Source of the DNA: Orbicella franksi
Lineage: Eukaryota
Direction of reading: 5' to 3'
Assembly (NCBI GenBank): GCA_964199315.1
Contig: OZ116708.1
Span: 21,390,001-21,454,000 of the forward strand
DNA: 64,000 nt
Position numbers and translations under genes: made by a program. Of the stretch, positions 2,510 to 62,438 are shown piece by piece; the stretch's first letter is position 1, and every line of letters begins with the position of its first letter. The notes below the pieces were generated by a model. The model was not told the origin of the DNA. It saw only the letters and a list, made by a program, of their open reading frames with translations, and made no database searches.

Positions 2510-3466
2510 TCAGTTCATAGCGGGTTCCACACGCTTCCATGGAGCTCGAAACACAAATTTTCTCATTTCTTTTTGGCGCAAACAATATATCAACGGATTC
2601 AGTAGCGAGTTTAATACGGCGCAAGTGCGAGCCAACGGCTCCCATACAACAAACACGGCGTCTAAGTTTAAATGTTTCTTCACTCCTACTAGTAATAAAA
2701 AGATTGTTAAGGCCATTGGAAGGAAACTTAGCAGTACAGCGCTTACTACAAACGCAGTGGTCTTGAGCGCTTTGTTCTCTTTAACAAACCTTTCCATTTC
2801 TTCTTGGGGCAACTGTTGGGTTTTGATCCTTCTTTCGTGGCGAAGTGATTCACGGTACAAAATAGCATAGGTTATGGTGATAAAAAGGATACAGAAGATC
2901 ATAGCTGAAGAAACTATTAAATTAAGCATAGTCCTTACAATGACGTTATTGGAAAAATATTTCATGCCTAGAGACATAAAAGAAAAGGCCCAAATAACGA
3001 TCGCTGCCACCTTAATTTTCCGTTTAGTGACAATGCATGGGTAGCTCATGGTAAATTTAACCGCTATTAGTCTCTCGGAAGTAATCAAAATCAGATGAAG
3101 CGACGAACAGACAGTCAAGACACGCAAAAAGAACTTGTGACAATCTTCAGCCATGCTACGTTCGATACCATTATAATTAAGGAGATAAAACGTTTTCTGT
3201 GCGATAAGCGATGGTTGTACTACTAGACCAGTTAGTGCGTCAGTTGCCGCTAAGCAGGCCAGCAGGATGTTAGGGTTGCTTTGGAGTCTTCGTCTTCTTT
3301 TTACGGCCATTATCACCAGCACATTAAACACAACTGTGAAGGGACAAGTGATGCCGTTAATGATGATAGTGATGATACTGACTTGTTGCGCGAGATTTGA
3401 TGTGTCGCCTTGTGCTGTCATCTCAGTGGCGTTTGTAAAATTTGATCCAGAGATGAGTTTGGCCAT
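2510..3466 (-). CDS. Intronless class A (rhodopsin-like) orphan GPCR, array copy 1, 318 aa
   Basis: 7 hydrophobic segments; TM2 LACLAATDALTGL, TM3 end ITSERL (DRY equivalent), TM7 NSLLNPLIY (NPxxY); N-glycosylation sequons NFT/NAT after MAKLISG (ATG at 3466); in-frame TAA upstream. Confidence 0.9.
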   Translation of the reverse strand: MAKLISGSNFTNATEMTAQGDTSNLAQQVSIITIIINGITCPFTVVFNVLVIMAVKRRRRLQSNPNILLACLAATDALTGLVVQPSLIAQKTFYLLNYNGIERSMAEDCHKFFLRVLTVCSSLHLILITSERLIAVKFTMSYPCIVTKRKIKVAAIVIWAFSFMSLGMKYFSNNVIVRTMLNLIVSSAMIFCILFITITYAILYRESLRHERRIKTQQLPQEEMERFVKENKALKTTAFVVSAVLLSFLPMALTIFLLLVGVKKHLNLDAVFVVWEPLARTCAVLNSLLNPLIYCLRQKEMRKFVFRAPWKRVEPAMN

Positions 3467-3839
3467 GTTTAGAAAGCGCAGCGAAGGTAAACTGACTTCT
3501 CGGATCACTCGAGCATTTTTATTTGTTGTTCCCTTGATTGATTCACCGCCACGTTAAGTGTAACATGTGTTTTTCTCTCACGGTTCCTATGTATTAGCCA
3601 AATTTATTAGTCGGCCTTAAATTCTCGGCCGATTACTGAATTATCATCATTATCAGCAGTTAAAGGTAATTTTCCGTTGTCTTGTAATTTTAGTTCCAGT
3701 GTAGTCCACTAATAAATGCCTGAGGCGGTTGAGCCACTTAGATGGGAACATTTTTAGAAGTTATAACTATTTTTTTCAATTTAGAAACTGGGAAAGATGC
3801 TCTTTTATCCAAAACCAAGAGCTGAAATTAACAGCCCAA

Positions 3840-8658: not shown

Positions 8659-9753
8659 TCAGTTCATAGCGGGTTCCACACGCTTCCATGGAGCTCGAAA
8701 CACAAATTTTCTCATTTCTTTTTGGCGCAAACAATATATCAACGGATTCAGTAGCGAGTTTAATACGGCACAAGTGCGAGCCAACGGCTCCCATACAACA
8801 AACACGGCGTCTAAGTTTAAACGTTTCTTCACTCCTACTAGTATTAAAAAGATTGCTAAGGCCATTGGAAGGAAACTTAGCAGTACAGCGCTTACTACAA
8901 ACGCAGTGGTCTTGAGCGCTTTGTTCTCTTTAACAAACCTTTCCACTTCTTCTTGGGGCAACTGTTGGGTTTTGATCCTGCTTTCGTGGCGAAGTGATTC
9001 ACGGTACAAAATAGCATAGGTTATGGTGATAAAAAGGATACAGAAGGTCAGTGCTAAAGAAACTATTAAATTAAACGCAATTCTTACAATGACCTCATTG
9101 GAAACATATTTAATGCCTTGAGAGATAAAAGAAAAGGCCCAAAAAGTGATCACTGCTACGTTAATTTTCCGTTTAGTGACAATGTATGGGTAGCTCATGG
9201 TAAATTTAATTGCTATTAGTCTCTCGGAAGTGATCAATATCAGATGAAGCGACGAACAGACAATCAAGGTGTGCAAAAAAAACTTTTGACAAACTTCAGC
9301 CACGCTACGTTCGATACCATTATAATTAAGGAGATAAAACGTTTTCTGTGCGATAAGCGATGGCTGTACTACTAGACCAGTTAGTGCGTCAGTTGCCGCT
9401 AAGCAGGCCAGCAAGATGTTAGGGTTGCTTTGGAGTCTTCGTCTTCTTTTCACGGCCATTATCACCAGCACATTAAACAGAACTGTAAAGGGACAAGTGA
9501 TGCCGTTAATGATGATAGTGATGATACTGACTTGTTGTGCGAGATTTGATGTGTCGCCTTGTGCTGTCATCTCAGTAACATTTGTAAAATTTGATCCAGA
9601 AAGTTTGGCCGTGTTTAGAAAGCGCAGCGAAGGTAAACTGACTATTCGGATCGCTCGAGCATTTTTATTTGTTGTTGTCTCGATTGATTCACCGCCACGG
9701 TATGTGTCACATGTGTTTTTCTCTCGCGGTTCCCATCCATTAGCCGAATTCAT
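8659..9753 (-). CDS. Class A orphan GPCR, array copy 3 (364 aa from upstream ATG; start uncertain)
   Basis: Complete 7TM frame with ERL and NPLIY; the ATG used by copies 1, 2 and 5 is ACG here (9612), but the frame is open to an ATG at 9753. Confidence 0.85.
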   Translation of the reverse strand: MNSANGWEPREKNTCDTYRGGESIETTTNKNARAIRIVSLPSLRFLNTAKLSGSNFTNVTEMTAQGDTSNLAQQVSIITIIINGITCPFTVLFNVLVIMAVKRRRRLQSNPNILLACLAATDALTGLVVQPSLIAQKTFYLLNYNGIERSVAEVCQKFFLHTLIVCSSLHLILITSERLIAIKFTMSYPYIVTKRKINVAVITFWAFSFISQGIKYVSNEVIVRIAFNLIVSLALTFCILFITITYAILYRESLRHESRIKTQQLPQEEVERFVKENKALKTTAFVVSAVLLSFLPMALAIFLILVGVKKRLNLDAVFVVWEPLARTCAVLNSLLNPLIYCLRQKEMRKFVFRAPWKRVEPAMN

Positions 9754-14559: not shown

Positions 14560-15513
14560 TCAGTTCATAGCGTGTTCCTTAGGTTTACATGGAGTTCGAA
14601 ACACAAATTTTCTCATTTCTTTTTGGCGCAAACAATATATCAATGGATTCAGAAGCGAGTTTAATACGGCGCAAGTACGAGCCAACGGCACCGATACAAC
14701 AAGCACGGCGTTTAAGTTTAAATGTTTCTTCACTCCTACTGCTACTGAAAAGATAGTTAAAGCCATTGGAAGGAAACTTAGCAATACAGCGCTCACTACA
14801 AACGCAGTGGTCTTGAGCGCTTTGTTCTCGTTAACAAACCTTTCCACTTCTTCTTGGGGCAGCTGTTGGGTTTTGATCTTGCTTTCGTGGCGACGTGATT
14901 CACGGTACAAAACAGCATAGGTTGTGGTGATGAAAAAGATACAGAAGGTCATTGCTAAAGAAACTATTAAATGAAACGTAATTTTTATAATGACGTTACT
15001 GGAAACATATTTAATGCTTTGAGACATAAAAGAAAACGCCCAAAAACTGATCACTGCCACCTTAATTTTCCGTTTGGTGACAATGTATGGGTAGCTCATG
15101 GTAAATTTAATTGCTATTAGTCTCTCGCAAGTGATCAAAATCAGATGTAGCGACGAACAGACAGTCAAGGTACGCAAAAAGAACCTGTGACAATCTTCAG
15201 CTACGCTACTTTTGATACCACTATAGTTAAGCACATAAAAAGTTTTCCACACGATAAACGATGGCTGTACTACTAGACCAGTTAGTGCGTCAGTTGCCGC
15301 TAAGCAGGCGAGCAAGATGTTAGTGTTGCTTTGGAGTCTTCGTCTTCTTTTCACGGCCATTACCACCAACACGTTGAGTACAACCGTAAAAGGACAAGTA
15401 ATGCCGTTAATGATAATAGTAATGATACTAACTTCTTGTGCGACATTTGATTTGTCGCCTTGTGCGGTCATCTCAGTAATATTTGTAAAATTTGATCCAG
15501 AAAGTTTGGCCAT
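14560..15513 (-). CDS. Class A orphan GPCR, array copy 5, 317 aa
   Basis: Intact ORF MAKLSGSNFTNIT..., ITCERL, NSLLNPLIY; most divergent member of the array. Confidence 0.92.
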   Translation of the reverse strand: MAKLSGSNFTNITEMTAQGDKSNVAQEVSIITIIINGITCPFTVVLNVLVVMAVKRRRRLQSNTNILLACLAATDALTGLVVQPSFIVWKTFYVLNYSGIKSSVAEDCHRFFLRTLTVCSSLHLILITCERLIAIKFTMSYPYIVTKRKIKVAVISFWAFSFMSQSIKYVSSNVIIKITFHLIVSLAMTFCIFFITTTYAVLYRESRRHESKIKTQQLPQEEVERFVNENKALKTTAFVVSAVLLSFLPMALTIFSVAVGVKKHLNLNAVLVVSVPLARTCAVLNSLLNPLIYCLRQKEMRKFVFRTPCKPKEHAMN

Positions 15514-18927: not shown

Positions 18928-19890
18928 ATGGCGAACTTCCCCGTCAACGAAAACACCACAATCGAACTGAACGAAGCAAGCAAACCGTCAATCCCAACAG
19001 GAATAGCAGTATTTCTTTCAACCTTGAACATTTTGCTGTCCATCACTGCATCATTGGGCAATGCTTTGATCCTTGTTGCTCTTCATAAAGAGACTTCCCT
19101 TCATCCTCCAACGAAACTTCTGTTCCGGTGTCTGGCAATCACTGATCTTTCTGTTGGACTTATCATACACCCAATTACCGTCTTTTTTCATTCGTCTTCG
19201 GTAACAACATTAATAAACTGGAAAATCTTTTACTACATAGAAATGCTGCATAAGTTTTTAAGCTTTGTTTTGTGTCAAGTATCGATCTTAACGTCCGGCG
19301 CAATAAGCGTGGACAGACTCATAGCGCTGTTATCTGGACTAAGGTACAGACATGTTGTAACATTACCTCGAGTTCGTGCAGTTATCTCTTGCTTTTGGTT
19401 AATTGGTATATCGGTTGGATCAATATACCTTTGGAATGTTAGTGTAGCCTTTACTATAGCCACTGTCGATACACTATTTTCTCTCACAACCTCTGGCTTC
19501 TCCTATGGAAAGATTTTTCGCCAGCTTCGACATCAACTTCAAGTACACGCAGTCCCACAAGAACAAACTAACGGAGGACGAGCTCCTCTGAATATAGCAC
19601 GATACAAGAAGTCAGTTTCCAGCGCAATATGGGTGCAGCTGGCACTAGTTACGTGCTATACTCCGTTTTTCGTTGTAGTTATGTTCATGATATATGGTGG
19701 AATGTCTGGAGGCGAATTTCAAATTGCTTTCGAAATGACGGCAACTTTGTCCTACTTTAATTCGTCTCTTAACCCGATCCTTTACTGCTGGAAGATCAGA
19801 AGTGTACGAAAAGCAGCCAAGGACACGATCAAACAACTCAACTGCTCTAAATCAGCCCCAGTAAATGGTCCGCCGGATTGTATTCGGTGA
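18928..19890 (+). CDS. Intronless class A orphan GPCR (melanocortin/adenosine-receptor-like cnidarian type), 320 aa
   Basis: GNALIL (TM1), LAITDLSVG (TM2), ISVDRL (DRY equivalent), NSSLNPILY (NPxxY), N-terminal NTT sequon; distinct subfamily from the minus-strand array. Confidence 0.92.
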   Translation: MANFPVNENTTIELNEASKPSIPTGIAVFLSTLNILLSITASLGNALILVALHKETSLHPPTKLLFRCLAITDLSVGLIIHPITVFFHSSSVTTLINWKIFYYIEMLHKFLSFVLCQVSILTSGAISVDRLIALLSGLRYRHVVTLPRVRAVISCFWLIGISVGSIYLWNVSVAFTIATVDTLFSLTTSGFSYGKIFRQLRHQLQVHAVPQEQTNGGRAPLNIARYKKSVSSAIWVQLALVTCYTPFFVVVMFMIYGGMSGGEFQIAFEMTATLSYFNSSLNPILYCWKIRSVRKAAKDTIKQLNCSKSAPVNGPPDCIR

Positions 19891-55159: not shown

Positions 55160-55785
55160 TTAAGCTTGCTGTTCAGCATATCAATCAGCATATAATCAGG
55201 TTATACTGTATGTAGCTGAACACTAAACACGCGGCTAATATGACCAGTTTGTTAACTTAAAAAACGTTCAAAGTAAACCAGATGTGACTTAGATCAAACT
55301 TCATAAGTTACGTGAGCAAAGTGCACTGTCTATTAGAAATTTGATCTTCGTAGCGCCAGTTTATTTGTCAGATCCACTTCAATCCATTTTAGCTCCACGA
55401 CAACAAAGACTAAACAATTTAAGTTTGGATGATTGCACTTAAGTGCAATACCAGTAACAAATATCAGTGTTGGAAAGAGGGGCTCCTAAGCCATAGAATT
55501 AATCAATAATAATGTTCTAATAATTTATCTTTTATGTTACTTTGGGCACTTCCAGAAAATATCCATACTCCCCCCCCCCCCCCCCCCCCTACAGAAGGGA
55601 TTGGGGAAGGGGATTCTGTAAGACCAAATAATTTAAAGAAATATATGAAGCTTTTAAATTATTAGAATTTCCAGAGGGGAAGGGGGGTCTTAAATAAAAT
55701 CCCTTCTGTGGGGGGGTATGGCTATTTTCTGGAACTACACATTTCTGATACATTACTAATATATACATTTGTTCTATCTACAGAA

Positions 55786-58700
55786 ATGGGTGGAAATCAA
55801 TCTAATTTACCCCCTCGACCGCTGGGTTTTGAATATTTTTGTATAGCCCTCCGTACGACAGATAGGATGCGAGTCGTACTTGGTACAGATCATGAGATTA
55901 GCATTATTCGCCAGGCTATCGTAGAATCATGGCCTAAGGGTATACAGGAAGAAGAATTCAAAATGAATGGGGTACATCAATTCAAGCTTAAAGGGAATCC
56001 ATTTTCCGTGGCTTCTTCGTCAACTGATGCGGCAGATTCCAGGAAATTGGGAGGGAATGTCCTGCATAGGCTTTACCGAGATGGATGGAGGCTCCAGGTT
56101 GCTGGAGACTTCACGCAGACAACGGATCTTACTACCTGGATCTTCAAGAAAGACCCAAATGCTGTATGTCCATCTGTGCCGTTTCTTATCGTGGGCCTTA
56201 GCAGCTGGGACAGTTTGATGGTACTCAATGGACCAATGGAGCTCCATCAGGTCATTAAAGATGCAGTAGAGAAGTCATGGCCAAGTGGAATACAAAAATG
56301 GACATATGAAAATGATGTTTTGAAGGTCAAGATGAAAGGCAATCCTTGGCATACGAATGGAGAAGACACAGTGCATGCGAGAGTGATACTGCATACACTT
56401 GTGAGTGAGCTACTCATTCGAGGGTGGAAGTTGTATGGAAATTCCAACCTTAGAAGCAGTGCTAACACCCTTTTTTTCGAACGTGACACAAACATCTCAC
56501 CTGGGATGCAGCCCTCTCCAGTGTACTGCACAATAAGCTTCAACAGCGAGGACCTGCTCCGGTTGATTGGCTTTCCAGAGGGCATGGTATCTGCTGTCCG
56601 AAACACCATCCAGACCTTCTGGGCAAGAGGTATCCAAGGAGAATCACGCTATGCTGAGAGTTGGCAGTTCAAGCTACGTGGAACCCCATGGTGGGCATCA
56701 GGTACCGAGGCAGTGGACTCAAGATTTCTGGTACTGAAGCTGATAGAAGCTATCCAAGCATACGGTTGGAGTGTGGTCACTGCTATTGATTGCTCAAGGA
56801 AAGATTCTGATAAAAGCAGTCTACTGTTCACACAGTCCCAACCAAGACAGTCTCCATTCTTTTGCATAAGCTTGAATGAGTCTGACAAATTGCGGCTGAT
56901 AAATGCACCAGACAATATCACACAGGTAAGTGGTAATGATTACATTGAAATTTCCATGTCAGTTCTTAATTCCAAAATTAACAGAAAACTATCTGAGAAG
57001 ACATAATATTTGTGCTTTGAAAGGAATGCTATTTTGAGATAACTTTTGTTTACTAGCACTTTGAACCTAACTTGTCTAGCGATTACCTTTTTGGCTGTTA
57101 TCAGTCATAATAAATATATTTATTATGTGCAGCATTTGCCAACAAACCTTGAAAAAAAGAAACCAACAAAGGGTCAAAATCTACCAATTGCAACCCACAC
57201 GACATGGCTTTTTGAACCCATCAATCAGAAGTTAACTACTCTTTCTTGAGAGGTTGACACTAGTGAAACATGAAAATATCAAAACATTAAATAGCTTAGA
57301 AAAACAACATTACATTTATATCATAATACAAATGTATGTGCACTAGGTGGAATTTTTTGCCCAATAGCCCTGCAAAAGTTTCTGAGAGGGAAATTTGACA
57401 AAATCTATGACATCAGAGGGTAAGCTTGCATTGTTACCCATGAACATTGGCCAATGACCGCTGTTTTCACACTGATCTAAAAAACTGTCTGTCCATGTGA
57501 CAGATCATTTCAATCAGTGACTGGTGCTAAAGGGAAACAGTTGTCAAATGATTTTATTCCCTGAGAATTTGTAATGTTTCCCAGTTTCTCTTGGGACCAG
57601 TCACTACAGAGTGTGTTCTGTTTCTGTTCTGTTCTGTTTGTTTATTTTGCCTTTTTGCTTAATGTACAGTATTTATAAATATTTTAATGCGAGGTAAGGT
57701 GACCTTTAGAAACCATCAGGCTTTTAGTTGAGGCCGCCTCGTACATAACTTACAATACAGTTACATAAGTAATGCAACAGTGTGCAGCTTTGCCAGTTCA
57801 GTAATTATTTTACTAAAAACTCTAGCAGTTTTTGCTTAAAATTGGGGAAACTTTGTGTAAATGTTCTCCACAATACCATGTACAGTAAGCTTAATATCTG
57901 GCTTTCATTCACTCATGAAATTATACAGATTTTGCTACCACTATTTTTGTGTCCAATCCTTCCACCCCCCCCCCCCCCAAAAAAAAAAATGTGGTGTCAG
58001 GTGTGAATGCACTCGTAAAATATTTTATGACTCTACTATTTCCGACTTAGTGTACCAATCCCTCTATTACAACATTAAACACTTGATAGCTGGTCCTGAG
58101 AGAAACAGCTTAAACAAAATTGCTGTAAATGTCTTTGTTGCGATATACATGTATGAAACAAATCACTGAAAAAAAGAGTTTGTGTGTAGTGGAAGTTATG
58201 GTCAACATTCACAGGTAACAGACTGCATTGTTATATAGCTGGCGTTTTTCCCGCCACAGCGCACCCATTTATTGGCTAGTTCATGGTCATATGACATCTA
58301 ACAATGACACTGTTACCTGCCAAAATTAATGCCATGAGCGGGCAACATTGTGAAAACTGTGACCTCAAAATTAATGGGAAACAGTTAACTGTTACCGGCG
58401 AAATGTTGACCACTGTTGCACATCATTTGTCAATAGAGTGCTTATAAAAACTTGTTTTCCACCAGTTTGACCCATTTGTTTTGCTATATAACAAATCACT
58501 TAATGACTGGTCCCTTGGGGAACAGTGAATTTTGTTTCCCAAGAATCTCAATGTTTCCCGAGATGAAGTTGAGAGAGACATTGAGATTCTCAGGAAACAA
58601 AATTCACTGTTCTCCTCAGGACAGGTCAAGAAGTGTTAACTGTTACCCTGTGACATCATGGATTTTGCAATGTTGCTTGCTCAGAGACAGCAAAAAAGAG

Positions 58701-59922
58701 TTTTATTGTACAGTTATGCATGTCATATTACCTCAAAGAAACAACTGAAAGCACATGCTATTGGAGAAAACATTCCTGCTATAATAACAATTTTAAAAAG
58801 ATGATTCCCAGTCCATACTGTGCAGTCTCAGCACCCTAATGTTTATAAGTCTCACTCGATGGAATGGGAATCAATGTTACTCATTATGAACAACATACCT
58901 CATCTTTGAGGCCTTTCAAATTCTTTTCCAACAGCTTCATTGATTTTTACAGATGCAAAGTTATTTCATCAAATTATATGAGAAAGAACAAAGCATCAGG
59001 CTTTGCATCCATAATGGCGGTTGACATGAAACTTTGAATTTATTTCATGTAAGTAGTGGCAAAATGTTACATTTTGTGATGTCTCAAATGACGCAAAACA
59101 AAAACTTAAATATGTAAACGAACTCTCGATAGTGCACAGTACTAACAGGAAATCGTCTTTAATGCGCTATTCAGTAACACGCAGACTCTAAAATTCAAAG
59201 CTCGCCGGCTCCTCCCAGTTTCCAACTACTGCCAAGCTCTGTTTCATTGTCTGAACTGTGCTTAAGGATTTGATTACCGTGTGCTTGGCACTAGTCAGAA
59301 GCTGGGAGGAACCACCAAACATTTGATTGACGGTAACAAAAAACGCATTTGTTGGTTGAGCTTTGAATTTTGGAGTCTGCATGTCCTTGAAAGGTGCAGT
59401 AAATATGACTCAGTTCTTTTGTCTTGTGATATTCAGATTTGCCGAGAAGTCATTCAATCCCAGTATGTCCTTGGTGTGCAAAGAGAACAGCTTTACGGCA
59501 CAAGTTATGAGTTCAAATTTAATGGCTACCCCTGGAGTTGTGGAATTAATGGTCATGATGGACTCCATGGCAGAAACATGATATGTCATTTGATTGCCAC
59601 CCTGGCCAGAAATAACTGGAGGCTGGTCATGGCAGCAGATGTATCTGCCAAGTATATTCACCAGGACAAAGGTGAAGACTATCCACTGGACGTGGACAGT
59701 ATTTTCTTCACATATGATCCAATGGCAGCTCAAGCGACAGCACCACCCTATGCCCAGCCTCCATCTTACGGGCTGCTTCCACAAGGTCAACCTCCACCAC
59801 CATTTGTTCCTGCACCGTATGCTCCTGCACCATACCCTTCAGCACCGTACGCTCCTGCACCCTCCACTGAACCCCCACCATTTGCTCCTCCAGCCTATGG
59901 GATGTATCCTCCTCCTCAGTGA
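55786..59922 (+). CDS. Uncharacterised 541-aa protein: N-myristoylation consensus, four ~110-120 aa internal repeats, Pro/Tyr-rich PPxY tail
   Basis: Coding exons 55786-56925 (donor acacag|gtaagt) and 59437-59922 (acceptor attcag|ATT), phase 0; the join LRLINAPDNITQ|ICREVIQSQY completes repeat 4; acceptor at 55783 implies an upstream UTR exon; AATAAA at 60054. Confidence 0.85.
58250..58690. repeat. Interspersed repeat ending in ~140-bp imperfect hairpin; related decayed copy at ~57330-57610
   Basis: gactggtcccttggggaacagtgaattttgtttcccaagaatctcaatgttt ... acattgagattctcaggaaacaaaattcactgttctc. Confidence 0.6.
59159..59402. mobile_element. Palindromic MITE, same family as 27577-27860, one arm internally deleted
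   Basis: ctctaaaattcaaagctc ... aaaacgcatttgttggttgagctttgaattttggagtctgcatg..aaaggtgcagtaa. Confidence 0.7.
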
Positions 59923-62438
59923 AGAGGGCTGAGAACAGCACCTGGCCCAAAAGGGCCTTGTATGTACATGTATTATTAAAACAAGGTCCCAAGTGTGTAC
60001 ACACCTAACCAAAGATGGTCCATAGTATACATATGTCTAATAAGGACCTTGTAAATAAAAACTGTATTTATTTAATAATTGAAAATTTCGTATAGGGGAA
60101 CTGTTTACAATATTATTTGGATCATTATCATATTAGTACTTCAGTCCCTGAACGAGCTAGAAAAGTATCAGTTCTAATCAGGGCATGGCGCAATTGAATG
60201 TGCCACAAATTTTGAGCATGTGTGATCCCTAAGGGATCAGGAAATATATAAACTTCAAAATTTCATACAAAATGTTCGGGTACAGCCTTTTTTTGACACC
60301 CAGAAATTTTGCAGTTCTCAAAGTCAATCTTGATTTTGCACCCAGAGTTAGGATTTCACCAATTATTAGGCTTCACAAGCACTGTAATTGTTTGGAGTCA
60401 ATTTGTATCTAGCACGATGCATCAAATTCATATCTATGCATAGGTTTATGCTACTGAGGCAAAGTGTACACGGAATGCAGTCATAGAGATTCCCCTGCAC
60501 ATTGTAGACCAAATATGCAAACGAAACATGGTGTAAGAATGGTATACAATTTTTGCTTTGAATGAACAGATCTTAGATAGGGTAAATGGGCTATATATGA
60601 GGTAGTGTTTACATGTGAAAACTCATGCTGGTGTGAGTTCTGTAGCAATATATGACTAGGTGACTTCATAATGTGTACCTGTTTTCTTCATTTCACATCC
60701 AACCCTGTTGGGGAGAGGAGTTACTCTACAAAGTTCCACACTGGGAAGCTCAGCTCAAGATCCAACCTCTCACCCTTTTGTATACCATTTTGACAGTAAA
60801 GGTACCCCTTTCGAATACCTTCAATTGAAAAAAGGTACCCCTTCACATACGTTCATAACTGGCATGTATTTTGAATATATTGCCAAAAAAGGAAAACTGC
60901 TTGTTATTTTCATGTGGTGTTTAATAAGTGAAATGATACAGCCATGGGGTGCGTCTGGTCACAGTATTTTATTTGAAGGCCCTTTAAAATACATGCAACT
61001 AAATGAAATATTTTAATTAGAGGCCTTTAATTAAAATACATGTAACTAACTGACAGATTTCCCTACCCTTTCATGTACCTCAACTTGCAAAATCCCTACC
61101 CTTTTACCAAAGCTAGACAAAGGTACCCCTTTCGGTTTGAGCCTCCCATATAGGTCATTATGAGGAGCACCCCCATGGGAATCTGACATGGTTTATGTGA
61201 CAACATCTTGAGGTGAGTAATTCCAGAAACAACACCTGCAAATATTAAAATTTAAAGTCTACCAAAAGACTGACTTTCCTTCAAGGGGGGATTCCCATAT
61301 GAAAAGGTCAGGGGTGCTTGTCAGAAAATTTGAATTTAACCCCCGAGGGAGATCAATCTGGGTGTGGCTCAAGATTTAATTGATCCCTGTAAAATAGCAT
61401 GTACCACTTCAAAGGGACATGAAGTTTTTTTGTTTTTTTTTAGCTTTTTCTTCCAGTGTAACCCTGATACCCTAGGGCATGAACCTTGACACCACTTCGT
61501 CCTGAACACCCTAAGTGAAACCAAAACCCTGATTTACACCCCTGAGGGAGGGGAGCAGCATTCTCGACCTTTCCAAATGGGAATAGTCACCCCCCCCCCC
61601 CACCCTTCCGAGGCTGATTTCATCCTGAAAACAAGGGGTCATTTGTTGTTTCGACATGTTACTGATGCTAGATTTTGTATGGGAATAAAAATTTAAAGCG
61701 GGTACTGTGACTGAATGAACATGACTCAGCACGACTCAAAAGGGTGTGACACGTGCTGATATCAGCTAAACAAAAACAGAGCCATAAGAGGAGGGAGCTC
61801 AGGGTGGACTCCCATATAGAGGGGCGTGAAGGTGTAAAATGGGAATTGAGATTTGCCCGTTTTGGGGCTGGGAAAATGGGATTTACTGCACTGGGACAGG
61901 GATTCAACTACTGGGTATGGGATGAACAATTTCGGGTGAGGGATTTTTATTTTTAGCGCTCTCTGACCCTAGTTTTTGACACCACTGCTTAATTGAGCCT
62001 ATTCTTTTACATAAAGAATTAAAATTCTACATCATTAGACTTCAGTAGGCACAAAATCATGACATTTTTCGTTTCCGCGTTCTAGCTACCAGGCTCTACA
62101 TGGTTTTATTGTTAAGTTCTGTCTGTTTTCCTGGTCAGCGGTTTGTTGTTGATGGAATGATATGCGCATCTTTGCACGTGGCGGGAAAGATAAAAATGGC
62201 GTCCAATTCGCGGACTATTGATAATCAAAATCAAGTATATCAACGCAAAAAATGCTGTAATGCGCACAGAAAATAGTAAACTTATGTCTTGGAAATGGTG
62301 GCATGTTAATTGGTGCATCCAACGCTACAAAGAGTATTTACTCGATCACAACTGATTTTGACGGAGACGGGAGTAGGTGTCCTCGGAGCATTGAATGTTA
62401 TGTGCAGCTATGCAGGCAGTTGAACAAATGTTAGTTCT

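Follow-up and report, generated by a model that had tools for sequence, protein, structure and literature searches.

What does a coral protein do that is built of four similar domains, with a putative lipid anchor at one end and a proline-rich tail at the other? The question is raised by a gene at positions 55786–59922 of a 64,000-nucleotide stretch of the Orbicella franksi genome (GenBank assembly GCA_964199315.1, contig OZ116708.1, positions 21,390,001 to 21,454,000 of the forward strand), which was analysed as a whole and is called the window hereafter. An earlier note, made from the letters alone, had delimited the gene and described its product as an orphan array of four domains resembling GFRP and the C-terminal domains (CTDs) of KCTD proteins. 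Our computational analysis indicates that the protein probably consists of a ring-forming domain of the GFRP/KCTD-CTD/Q4D6Q6 type, fused fourfold, with a predicted lipid anchor and a tail carrying PPxY (PY) motifs. We are highly confident about the structure and the family assignment. On balance, we also lean towards reading the protein as a membrane-tethered single-chain pseudo-tetramer that would recruit Nedd4-type ubiquitin ligases, an adaptor role being the more tentative part of that reading.

Gene structure and expression

The gene lies on the plus strand in two exons (55786–56925 and 59437–59922), whose outer limits coincide exactly with the span given in the earlier note and which splice to encode 541 amino acids (aa). 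From an ATG at 55786, a frame of 380 codons stays open to 56925, where it ends at a consensus donor (CAG/GTAAGT); the second exon begins at 59437 after the acceptor ttcag/ATT, joins the first in phase 0 and ends with a TGA stop at 59920–59922. The splice joint was seen in an RNA contig of run X5 (record 13, 1928 nt), which covers positions 55717–56922 and resumes at 59434–60050, omitting 2511 nt bounded by GT..AG; moving the cut by 3 nt places it at 56925/59437. The exon occurs in 20 sequencing runs from 8 studies, 12 of them RNA runs, and run X1 had no contig on the coding sequence. The encoded protein, of ~60 kDa, would be cytosolic in the reading that we favour. Its gene comprises the following parts:

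55786–55821, plus strand: start codon and the 12 residues of the N-terminus (MGGNQSNLPPRP), which carry the predicted signal for N-myristoylation (Gly2, Ser6) and make up 12 of the ~15 residues of a putative flexible tether
55822–56157, plus strand: repeat domain 1, aa 13–124; hidden Markov model (HMM) domain at 13–124, BLASTP to the other repeats at E 5e-13 to 2e-15
56167–56490, plus strand: repeat domain 2, aa 128–235; recognised by HMM, BLASTP and positional orthology
56512–56841, plus strand: repeat domain 3, aa 243–352; the single domain chosen for modelling
56848–56925, plus strand: repeat domain 4, first part, aa 355–380, strands β1–β2, at the end of exon 1; recognised by HMM and BLASTP
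56926–59436, plus strand: intron, 2511 nt, phase 0, GT..AG; joint seen in the X5 contig; carries inverted-repeat elements resembling miniature inverted-repeat transposable elements (MITEs)
59437–59724, plus strand: repeat domain 4, second part, aa 381–476; includes a conserved insert specific to repeat 4, SAKYIHQDKGEDYPLDVDS, before the last strand
59725–59919, plus strand: proline-rich tail, aa 477–541; 25 of 65 residues are Pro; PPSY at 59758–59769 and PPAY at 59887–59898
59920–59922, plus strand: TGA stop codon, end of the open frame

The X5 contig differs from the window in 16 codons. All eight differences in the body of the protein are synonymous and three of the eight in the tail are not, which indicates strong purifying selection on the body and a looser constraint on the tail.

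Four diverged repeats with a ββαββαββ fold

The body is made of four homologous domains of ~110 aa, as had been proposed: pairwise BLASTP comparisons gave E values of 1e-12 to 1e-20 at 23–36% identity, far above chance, and the repeat motif originally quoted (D-x-LR, W-x2-GIQ, FKL-x-G-x-PW, GW and a terminal F) is the consensus of the family. Repeat 4, which the intron cuts after its first two strands, carries an insert with the family-wide consensus SADVSxK...YPxDVHSW. Our genome search found the domain in two genes, each with four repeats, and no single-domain copy. The only paralog (G000:C3:18782523-18791476, loci L002 and L004, minus strand) is 65% identical, also has four repeats, starts with MGGSQSN and is split in repeat 4 at about the same profile position by an intron of ~7.5 kb. 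One TAG, which may be an exon edge or a defect, falls within the profile match to the second exon of this paralog.

To describe the domain, we used an alignment of 78 single repeats headed by repeat 3 of the window (A1) and a more diverse profile of 132 repeats chosen at <33% mutual identity (A3). The AlphaFold2 model of repeat 3 from A1 had 94 as its predicted local distance difference test (pLDDT) value, a predicted template modelling score (pTM) of 0.86 and the topology ββαββαββ (E-E-H-E-E-H-E-E). When this model was compared exhaustively (VIA) with 48,161 Protein Data Bank (PDB) representatives, the top match was the Trypanosoma cruzi protein Q4D6Q6 (6XYB), with Z 12.5 and a root-mean-square deviation (rmsd) of 2.7 over 98 of 110 residues. 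The ranking by Foldseek was the same, with E 2.8e-6 and a template modelling (TM) score of 0.70 for Q4D6Q6. The second match (Z 9.1) was a chain of the T. brucei mitoribosome assemblosome (6SGA), whose chains FQ–FU are presumably the mt-SAF24 pentamer. That pentamer is described in PMC13759221. The next group, at Z 5.8–6.2, comprised an aspartokinase ACT region, GFRP, the H1 domain of KCTD16, the KCTD1 CTD and KCTD12 H1, all within the top seven. GFRP matched with Z 6.2 and rmsd 2.7 over 72 aligned residues (6z80_L) and with a Foldseek probability of 0.99 (1jg5_A); KCTD16 H1, KCTD1 CTD and KCTD12 H1 had Z 6.0, 5.9 and 5.8, respectively, at 10–12% identity, a likeness at the fold level only. 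The KCTD1 CTD and GFRP share a common fold and a pentameric assembly (PMC7618933).

The likeness to GFRP and KCTD CTDs thus stands in kind (Z ~6) and falls short of membership: neither a GFRP nor a BTB domain was matched in Pfam. In these model-based comparisons, Z ~6 is a shared arrangement and not a sign of common family. GFRP (PF06399) gave no Pfam hit at E up to 1, nor did the profiles hit it in the PDB at E up to 10; there was likewise no Pfam hit to a BTB/T1 domain, and domain 1 already begins at residue 13. A further suggested likeness, to DUF4177, found nothing in the negative Pfam scan, the one check made of it. Single-sequence searches of Pfam and PDB returned DUF1737 (E 0.2) and a ribosomal protein (E 0.98), which we discarded as noise.

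Profile comparison pointed to the same trypanosomatid protein. Against 177,635 PDB sequences, the top match of A3 was 6xyb_A (E 0.0048, 20.4 bits), aligned in register over positions 23–109, from helix 1 to the last strand; the less diverse A1 reached E 0.3 against the same chain. The A3 hit together with the structural match at Z 12.5 makes it probable that the repeat domain is a remote homolog of the Q4D6Q6 family. Q4D6Q6 and its T. brucei relative Q586B2 have the ββαββαββ topology and form a propeller-like homotetramer in the crystal, of 55 kDa by gel filtration; Q586B2 is found on endosomal vesicles and released without classical secretion, and the family was stated to have no relatives outside Bodonidae and Trypanosomatidae (PMC10899635, Nature Communications).

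A different lead follows from the weaker matches, since rings and domains of this general kind can act as sensors. GFRP senses phenylalanine and tetrahydrobiopterin (BH4), the KCTD1 CTD has an ion channel in its ring, and ACT domains offer a third model. By analogy, the coral ring might bind a metabolite or ion at its domain interfaces and allosterically regulate a partner enzyme, the tail being secondary. GFRP and several aspartokinase ACT regulatory domains do match at Z 5–6, binding of ligands or ions is known for the rings of GFRP and KCTD1 (PMC7618933), the highly conserved motifs outside the interfaces (WxxGIQ and GxPW) could line a pocket, and a ciliate fusion to a PARP, described below, suggests a regulatory or recognition module. 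However, the coral protein shares no conserved ligand site with GFRP or ACT domains and has no sequence similarity to either, and the conserved lipid anchor and PY motifs would be left unexplained. We consider a sensor of this type unlikely; it would be compatible with an adaptor and not exclusive of it.

A predicted single-chain ring

The four-domain model of a homolog from the coral Oculina, 82% identical to the window's protein over exon 1, was one rigid body (pLDDT 95, pTM 0.94). Information on how such domains close upon each other came from a two-repeat protein of the fungus Exidia (P0096), for which a symmetric head-to-tail dimer was predicted with a score of 0.85, the best of three controls scoring 0.00; the mark set for this score was reached by 21 of 30 solved homodimers and by none of 23 solved single chains. 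The runs agreed in at least 92% of contacts, with a partner pLDDT of at least 87. In this predicted dimer, the domain 1 sheet of each copy bears helix α2 and the pre-terminal insert from the other copy's domain 2, and residues 242–247, the equivalent of the repeat-4 insert, contact domain 1 of the other copy. The dimer is thereby predicted to close a four-domain ring.

GFRP-like domains had been expected to assemble as homo-pentamers, which would leave a four-domain chain one unit short. This expectation applies to the more distant GFRP and KCTD pentamers, whereas the nearest relative, Q4D6Q6/Q586B2, is a natural homotetramer; four fused domains would therefore make a complete ring and not an odd number. 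The most likely arrangement, judging from the models, is a single-chain pseudo-tetramer ring. Fold, rigidity and homology were computed here; for ring closure we rely on the dimer predicted for the fungal protein and on the solved tetramer.

It is highly improbable that the protein instead forms an open four-fifths ring, similar to those of GFRP, KCTD proteins or mt-SAF24, with room left for a fifth subunit or for a client domain that has this fold. In favour of such a gap, solved relatives at a greater distance are pentamers, and five family members have five repeats. Yet the closest solved relative is tetrameric, the prediction for the two-repeat relative is a symmetrically closed ring of four domains, and the genome, with only two four-repeat genes and without any single-domain copy, provides no free fifth subunit, so that this idea was left without support. 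Across the family, four repeats per protein were the commonest number (171 proteins), followed by two (45), three (31, many of which may be fragments), five (5) and eight (1).

A probably old family spread over several supergroups

The protein had been called an orphan, and this label proved wrong: at E up to 0.001, the single-repeat profile found 1,827 clusters (50% identity) among 1.84 billion representatives. Cnidarian members come from stony corals, Xenia, Hydractinia and a jellyfish; other animal members from the nematodes Toxocara, Romanomermis and Steinernema and from the salmon louse, the copepod Lepeophtheirus; fungal members from Rhizophlyctis, Mortierella, Exidia and Pleurotus; and protist members from Perkinsus (with eight repeats) and the diplonemid Lacrimia. 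The occurrence of similar proteins in fungi and scattered invertebrates, suggested in the earlier note, is therefore borne out. An ESM Atlas cluster whose commonest phylum is flatworms also matches the four-domain model. Nevertheless, no Pfam family matches the protein or its relatives, Pfam scans of ten longer relatives revealed no additional domains, the search of AFDB Swiss-Prot with the four-domain model retrieved no reviewed member, and no work on the family was found in the literature searched. The Swiss-Prot matches that did appear (RBM43, MurA and nucleolin; TM 0.10–0.17) were spurious multi-domain alignments, and the UniRef name 'Pkinase_fungal' of the Toxocara protein was not reproduced by a Pfam scan.

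One ESM Atlas cluster from ciliates (Ciliophora, 879 aa, 55 proteins) has the four-domain body fused to a PARP catalytic domain, matching with TM 0.78 by query over 465 residues. This fusion is a possible clue to a recognition or regulatory module.

Repeats 1–4 score best against the same positions when cnidarian proteins are compared with those of nematodes and the copepod, and this positional orthology within animals implies that the four-repeat form is older than the cnidarian–bilaterian split. Protist proteins already end in a repeat of the repeat-4 type. The patchy occurrence had been ascribed to either retention or horizontal gene transfer (HGT). The first part stands: the spread over supergroups and the positional orthology in animals, as read from the sequences, favour an old ancestry with many losses over HGT, which is not needed given the orthology of repeats among cnidarians, nematodes and the copepod, a judgement made without a formal tree test.

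Within Euglenozoa, the Lacrimia lanifica protein (P0109) has four repeats and an MG start; diplonemids are the sister group of kinetoplastids, and transcriptome contamination is possible in this case. Kinetoplastid proteins of the Q4D6Q6 type are single-domain and fall into four paralog groups, and the difference from P0109 raises the question of fission or fusion within Euglenozoa.

The N-terminus and its putative lipid anchor

The predicted protein starts with MGGNQSN, which fits the PROSITE N-myristoylation pattern M-G-{EDRKHPFYW}-x-x-[STAGCN]-{P}, in agreement with the G2/S6 consensus claimed for it. Such a signal depends on Gly2 lying at the true N-terminus, and a check for a coding upstream exon gave none. 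Over the 69 nt 5' of the ATG, a stretch without any in-frame ATG, the X5 contig and the genome are collinear, and a genomic in-frame TAG lies upstream at 55663–55665. A coral homolog with 74% identity begins with the same MGGNQS, and its spliced transcripts (L005, L006) contain a stop in frame 57 nt upstream of that start. An acceptor-like sequence just before the ATG (ctacag/AAATG) was considered as a splice site and is unused in the sole RNA contig that covers it. No transmembrane segment was detected in the protein (maximum KD19 1.36), and residues 1–10 of the Oculina model are coil with a pLDDT of 70.

Among 159 four-repeat relatives with a short N-terminus, 114 start with MG and 106 fit the myristoylation pattern. 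Besides the corals, MG starts are found in a jellyfish (MGANQSN), Hydractinia (MGSGCSS), a nematode (MGSKCST), the diplonemid (MGGKLSF) and also Perkinsus; the MG start, as far as these sequences tell, recurs in several supergroups even allowing for counts inflated by corals. Hydrozoan and nematode members have a Cys at position 5, that of Hydractinia being a candidate site for a second lipid. The annotated N-termini of the Toxocara canis (P0099) and Steinernema hermaphroditum (P0132) proteins are probably too long; internal MGANVST and MGTPVSY, respectively, stand just before domain 1 and fit the pattern of the family.

A myristoyl anchor would place the protein where G proteins act, and this bears on another possible function, that of a membrane scaffold which, similarly to KCTD12/16 H1, binds a signalling protein (G-beta-gamma, for instance) and so buffers or desensitises signalling at the plasma membrane. 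The H1 domains of KCTD8/12/16 are among the best structural matches outside kinetoplastids and KCTD12 H1 has been solved with G-beta-gamma (6m8s). Against this, the likeness is at the fold level only (Z ~6, 10–12% identity) and the coral protein has no BTB domain; H1 binds G-beta-gamma 5:5 by virtue of a pentamer geometry that is absent here; and the two-repeat members in chytrids, Mortierella and basidiomycetes, together with those of protists, argue for a more general cellular role. We regard such a scaffold as distinctly unlikely.

The proline-rich tail and its PPxY motifs

Both motifs announced for the tail are where they were expected: in the 65 residues of aa 477–541, 38% of which are Pro, PPSY occupies aa 488–491 and PPAY aa 531–534. 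PPxY motifs are well established as ligands of the WW domains of Nedd4/Rsp5 ubiquitin ligases. Of the 69 family tails that are at least 25 residues long, 35 contain such a motif, against 8.1 ± 2.2 in composition-preserving shuffles (maximum 14 in 200 shuffles). All the anthozoan tails examined have them, as do those of Hydractinia, Xenia, Steinernema and Lepeophtheirus. In two-repeat fungal proteins, the motif is N-terminal instead (PPIY in Exidia, PPPY in Rhizophlyctis and PPPY twice in Mortierella). That PPxY accompanies the domain and yet switches ends is good evidence that the motif matters, and we think it rather likely that the motifs of the coral tail engage WW domains.

The motifs could also be by-products of a Pro/Tyr-rich tail of low complexity, in which case the protein might, like Q586B2, associate with vesicles or be released unconventionally, or might simply be a substrate of ubiquitination, and would not be an adaptor. 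The tail is indeed repetitive and fast-evolving, as the codon differences described above illustrate (three of eight non-synonymous in the tail, none of eight in the body), its repeats vary between coral genera, some lineages do not have PPxY, and Q586B2 itself is both present on vesicles and released (PMC10899635). However, PPxY is four times above the expectation from composition (35 vs 8.1 ± 2.2), three fungal phyla have it again at the other end of the protein, and the X5 contig shows only a synonymous difference in the Tyr codon of PPSY. This explanation appears improbable to us.

A putative membrane-anchored adaptor

In the reading that we favour, Met1 would be removed and Gly2 N-myristoylated, as the consensus and its conservation suggest, and the myristate would tether the protein reversibly to the cytosolic face of a membrane through a flexible linker of ~15 residues. 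The four diverged ββαββαββ domains would pack head to tail, helix α2 of each on the sheet of the next, and close into a pseudo-fourfold ring that repeats within one chain the propeller-like homotetramer of Q4D6Q6/Q586B2. Since the domains differ from one another and are positionally conserved across animals, this ring would present one asymmetric binding surface instead of four or five equal ones. The disordered tail would offer its two PPxY motifs for docking to the WW domains of Nedd4-family HECT ubiquitin ligases, and the protein could act as a membrane-anchored ligase adaptor, directing a client bound to the ring towards ubiquitination and endosomal or ESCRT sorting. The vesicular location and non-classical release of Q586B2 fit the same theme by analogy and prove nothing for the coral protein.

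Several points weigh against this reading. Lipidation, WW binding and the ring client all stand at the level of prediction, myristate alone confers weak membrane binding, and two Oculina paralogs start with MGE, which disfavours myristoylation. The counts of MG starts and PPxY motifs include many close coral relatives and are not phylogenetically independent, and the Rhopilema, Lacrimia and Perkinsus members do not have PPxY. The four-domain model is that of the Oculina homolog and not of the window's own chain, whose putative closed ring is derived from the fungal dimer prediction and the solved tetramer; the profile match to Q4D6Q6 (E 0.005) is only modest. Finally, the raw-read RNA runs X23 and X24 had almost no coverage of the gene.

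A broader version of this reading would extend to trypanosomatids. The 'kinetoplastid-specific' Q4D6Q6/Q586B2 proteins would be the single-domain branch of an ancient family spanning several supergroups, whose ring is built as 4x1, 2x2, 1x4 or 8 domains and which ancestrally served as a lipid-anchored Nedd4/Rsp5 adaptor for endosomal sorting or ESCRT-type budding. We hold this to be a long shot; if true, the ancestral adaptor role would also explain how Q586B2, which has no signal peptide, reaches vesicles and medium.

Repeats and other features of the window

Upstream of the start codon, and separated from it by 45 nt, lies a MITE-like element of ~200 bp (55543–55741); its terminal inverted repeats are 32 nt long and 84% complementary, and it has a poly-C tract inside. 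RNA contigs pile on it at a depth of 100–500, with internal-deletion variants (55572 to 55712/55717), which indicates a multi-copy transcribed repeat. Its right arm contains an upstream open reading frame (ORF) of 13 codons (ATG at 55718). Within the intron, the segments 58497–58635 and 59153–59408 bear a near-perfect hairpin (61-nt arms, 82% complementary, 17-nt loop) and nested inverted repeats, and reads of unrelated transcripts stop on the first of these elements (loose ends at 58497 and 58544). The intronic inverted-repeat elements look like further MITE copies. Four intronless ORFs of 317–364 aa are located in the first third of the window, at 2510–3508, 8659–9753, 14560–15513 (minus strand) and 18928–19890 (plus strand).

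Comparison with known systems

The closest known counterpart of the coral protein is Q4D6Q6 (6XYB/6XYD), which has the same ββαββαββ topology, forms a ring of four units such as is predicted for the coral chain, and gave both the best structural match and the best, in-register, profile match in the PDB; Q586B2, a T. brucei virulence factor, additionally resembles the favoured reading in being vesicle-associated. These proteins differ in being single-domain homotetramers of ~115–119 aa without lipid anchor or PY tail and in their reported restriction to kinetoplastids (PMC10899635), whereas the coral protein has four diverged domains in one chain of 541 aa, ~15% identity to them and a family spread across several supergroups. 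The family would be tied to a virulence factor of trypanosomes that, according to earlier reports, lacks relatives beyond the kinetoplastids. Its natural series of two-, four- and eight-repeat (possibly also single-domain) members may show how homo-oligomeric rings become single asymmetric chains.

GFRP shares the general α/β fold and forms rings by head-to-tail packing, as is predicted for the coral protein. It is a homopentamer of 84 aa without detectable sequence similarity to the coral protein, and it binds GTP cyclohydrolase I, which nothing suggests for the latter. The KCTD CTDs (KCTD8/12/16 H1 and KCTD1) and mt-SAF24 are alike in fold class, and their oligomeric rings, comparable to the one predicted here, serve as protein-binding platforms. 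They differ in that a BTB or other N-terminal domain, which the coral protein does not have, drives their assembly as pentamers, and typical KCTD members are linked to ubiquitin ligases via BTB-Cul3, whereas the coral protein would use PPxY-HECT.

The functional analogues of the favoured reading are NDFIP1/2, ARRDC1, the yeast ARTs and myristoylated retroviral Gag with its PPxY late domains. By analogy, the coral protein would combine, as they do, membrane targeting, a folded body for recognition or assembly and PPxY motifs in a disordered segment. The folds are unrelated, the coral protein having no arrestin domain, transmembrane helix or Gag domain. With these comparisons, a large family without Pfam entry or reviewed member gains a fold, a probable quaternary logic and experimental handles (Gly2, the two PY tyrosines and the ring-closing insert). 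If the reading of the PY tail is true, its members would be Nedd4/Rsp5 adaptors of a new structural class, with representatives in corals, nematodes, crustaceans and early-diverging fungi.

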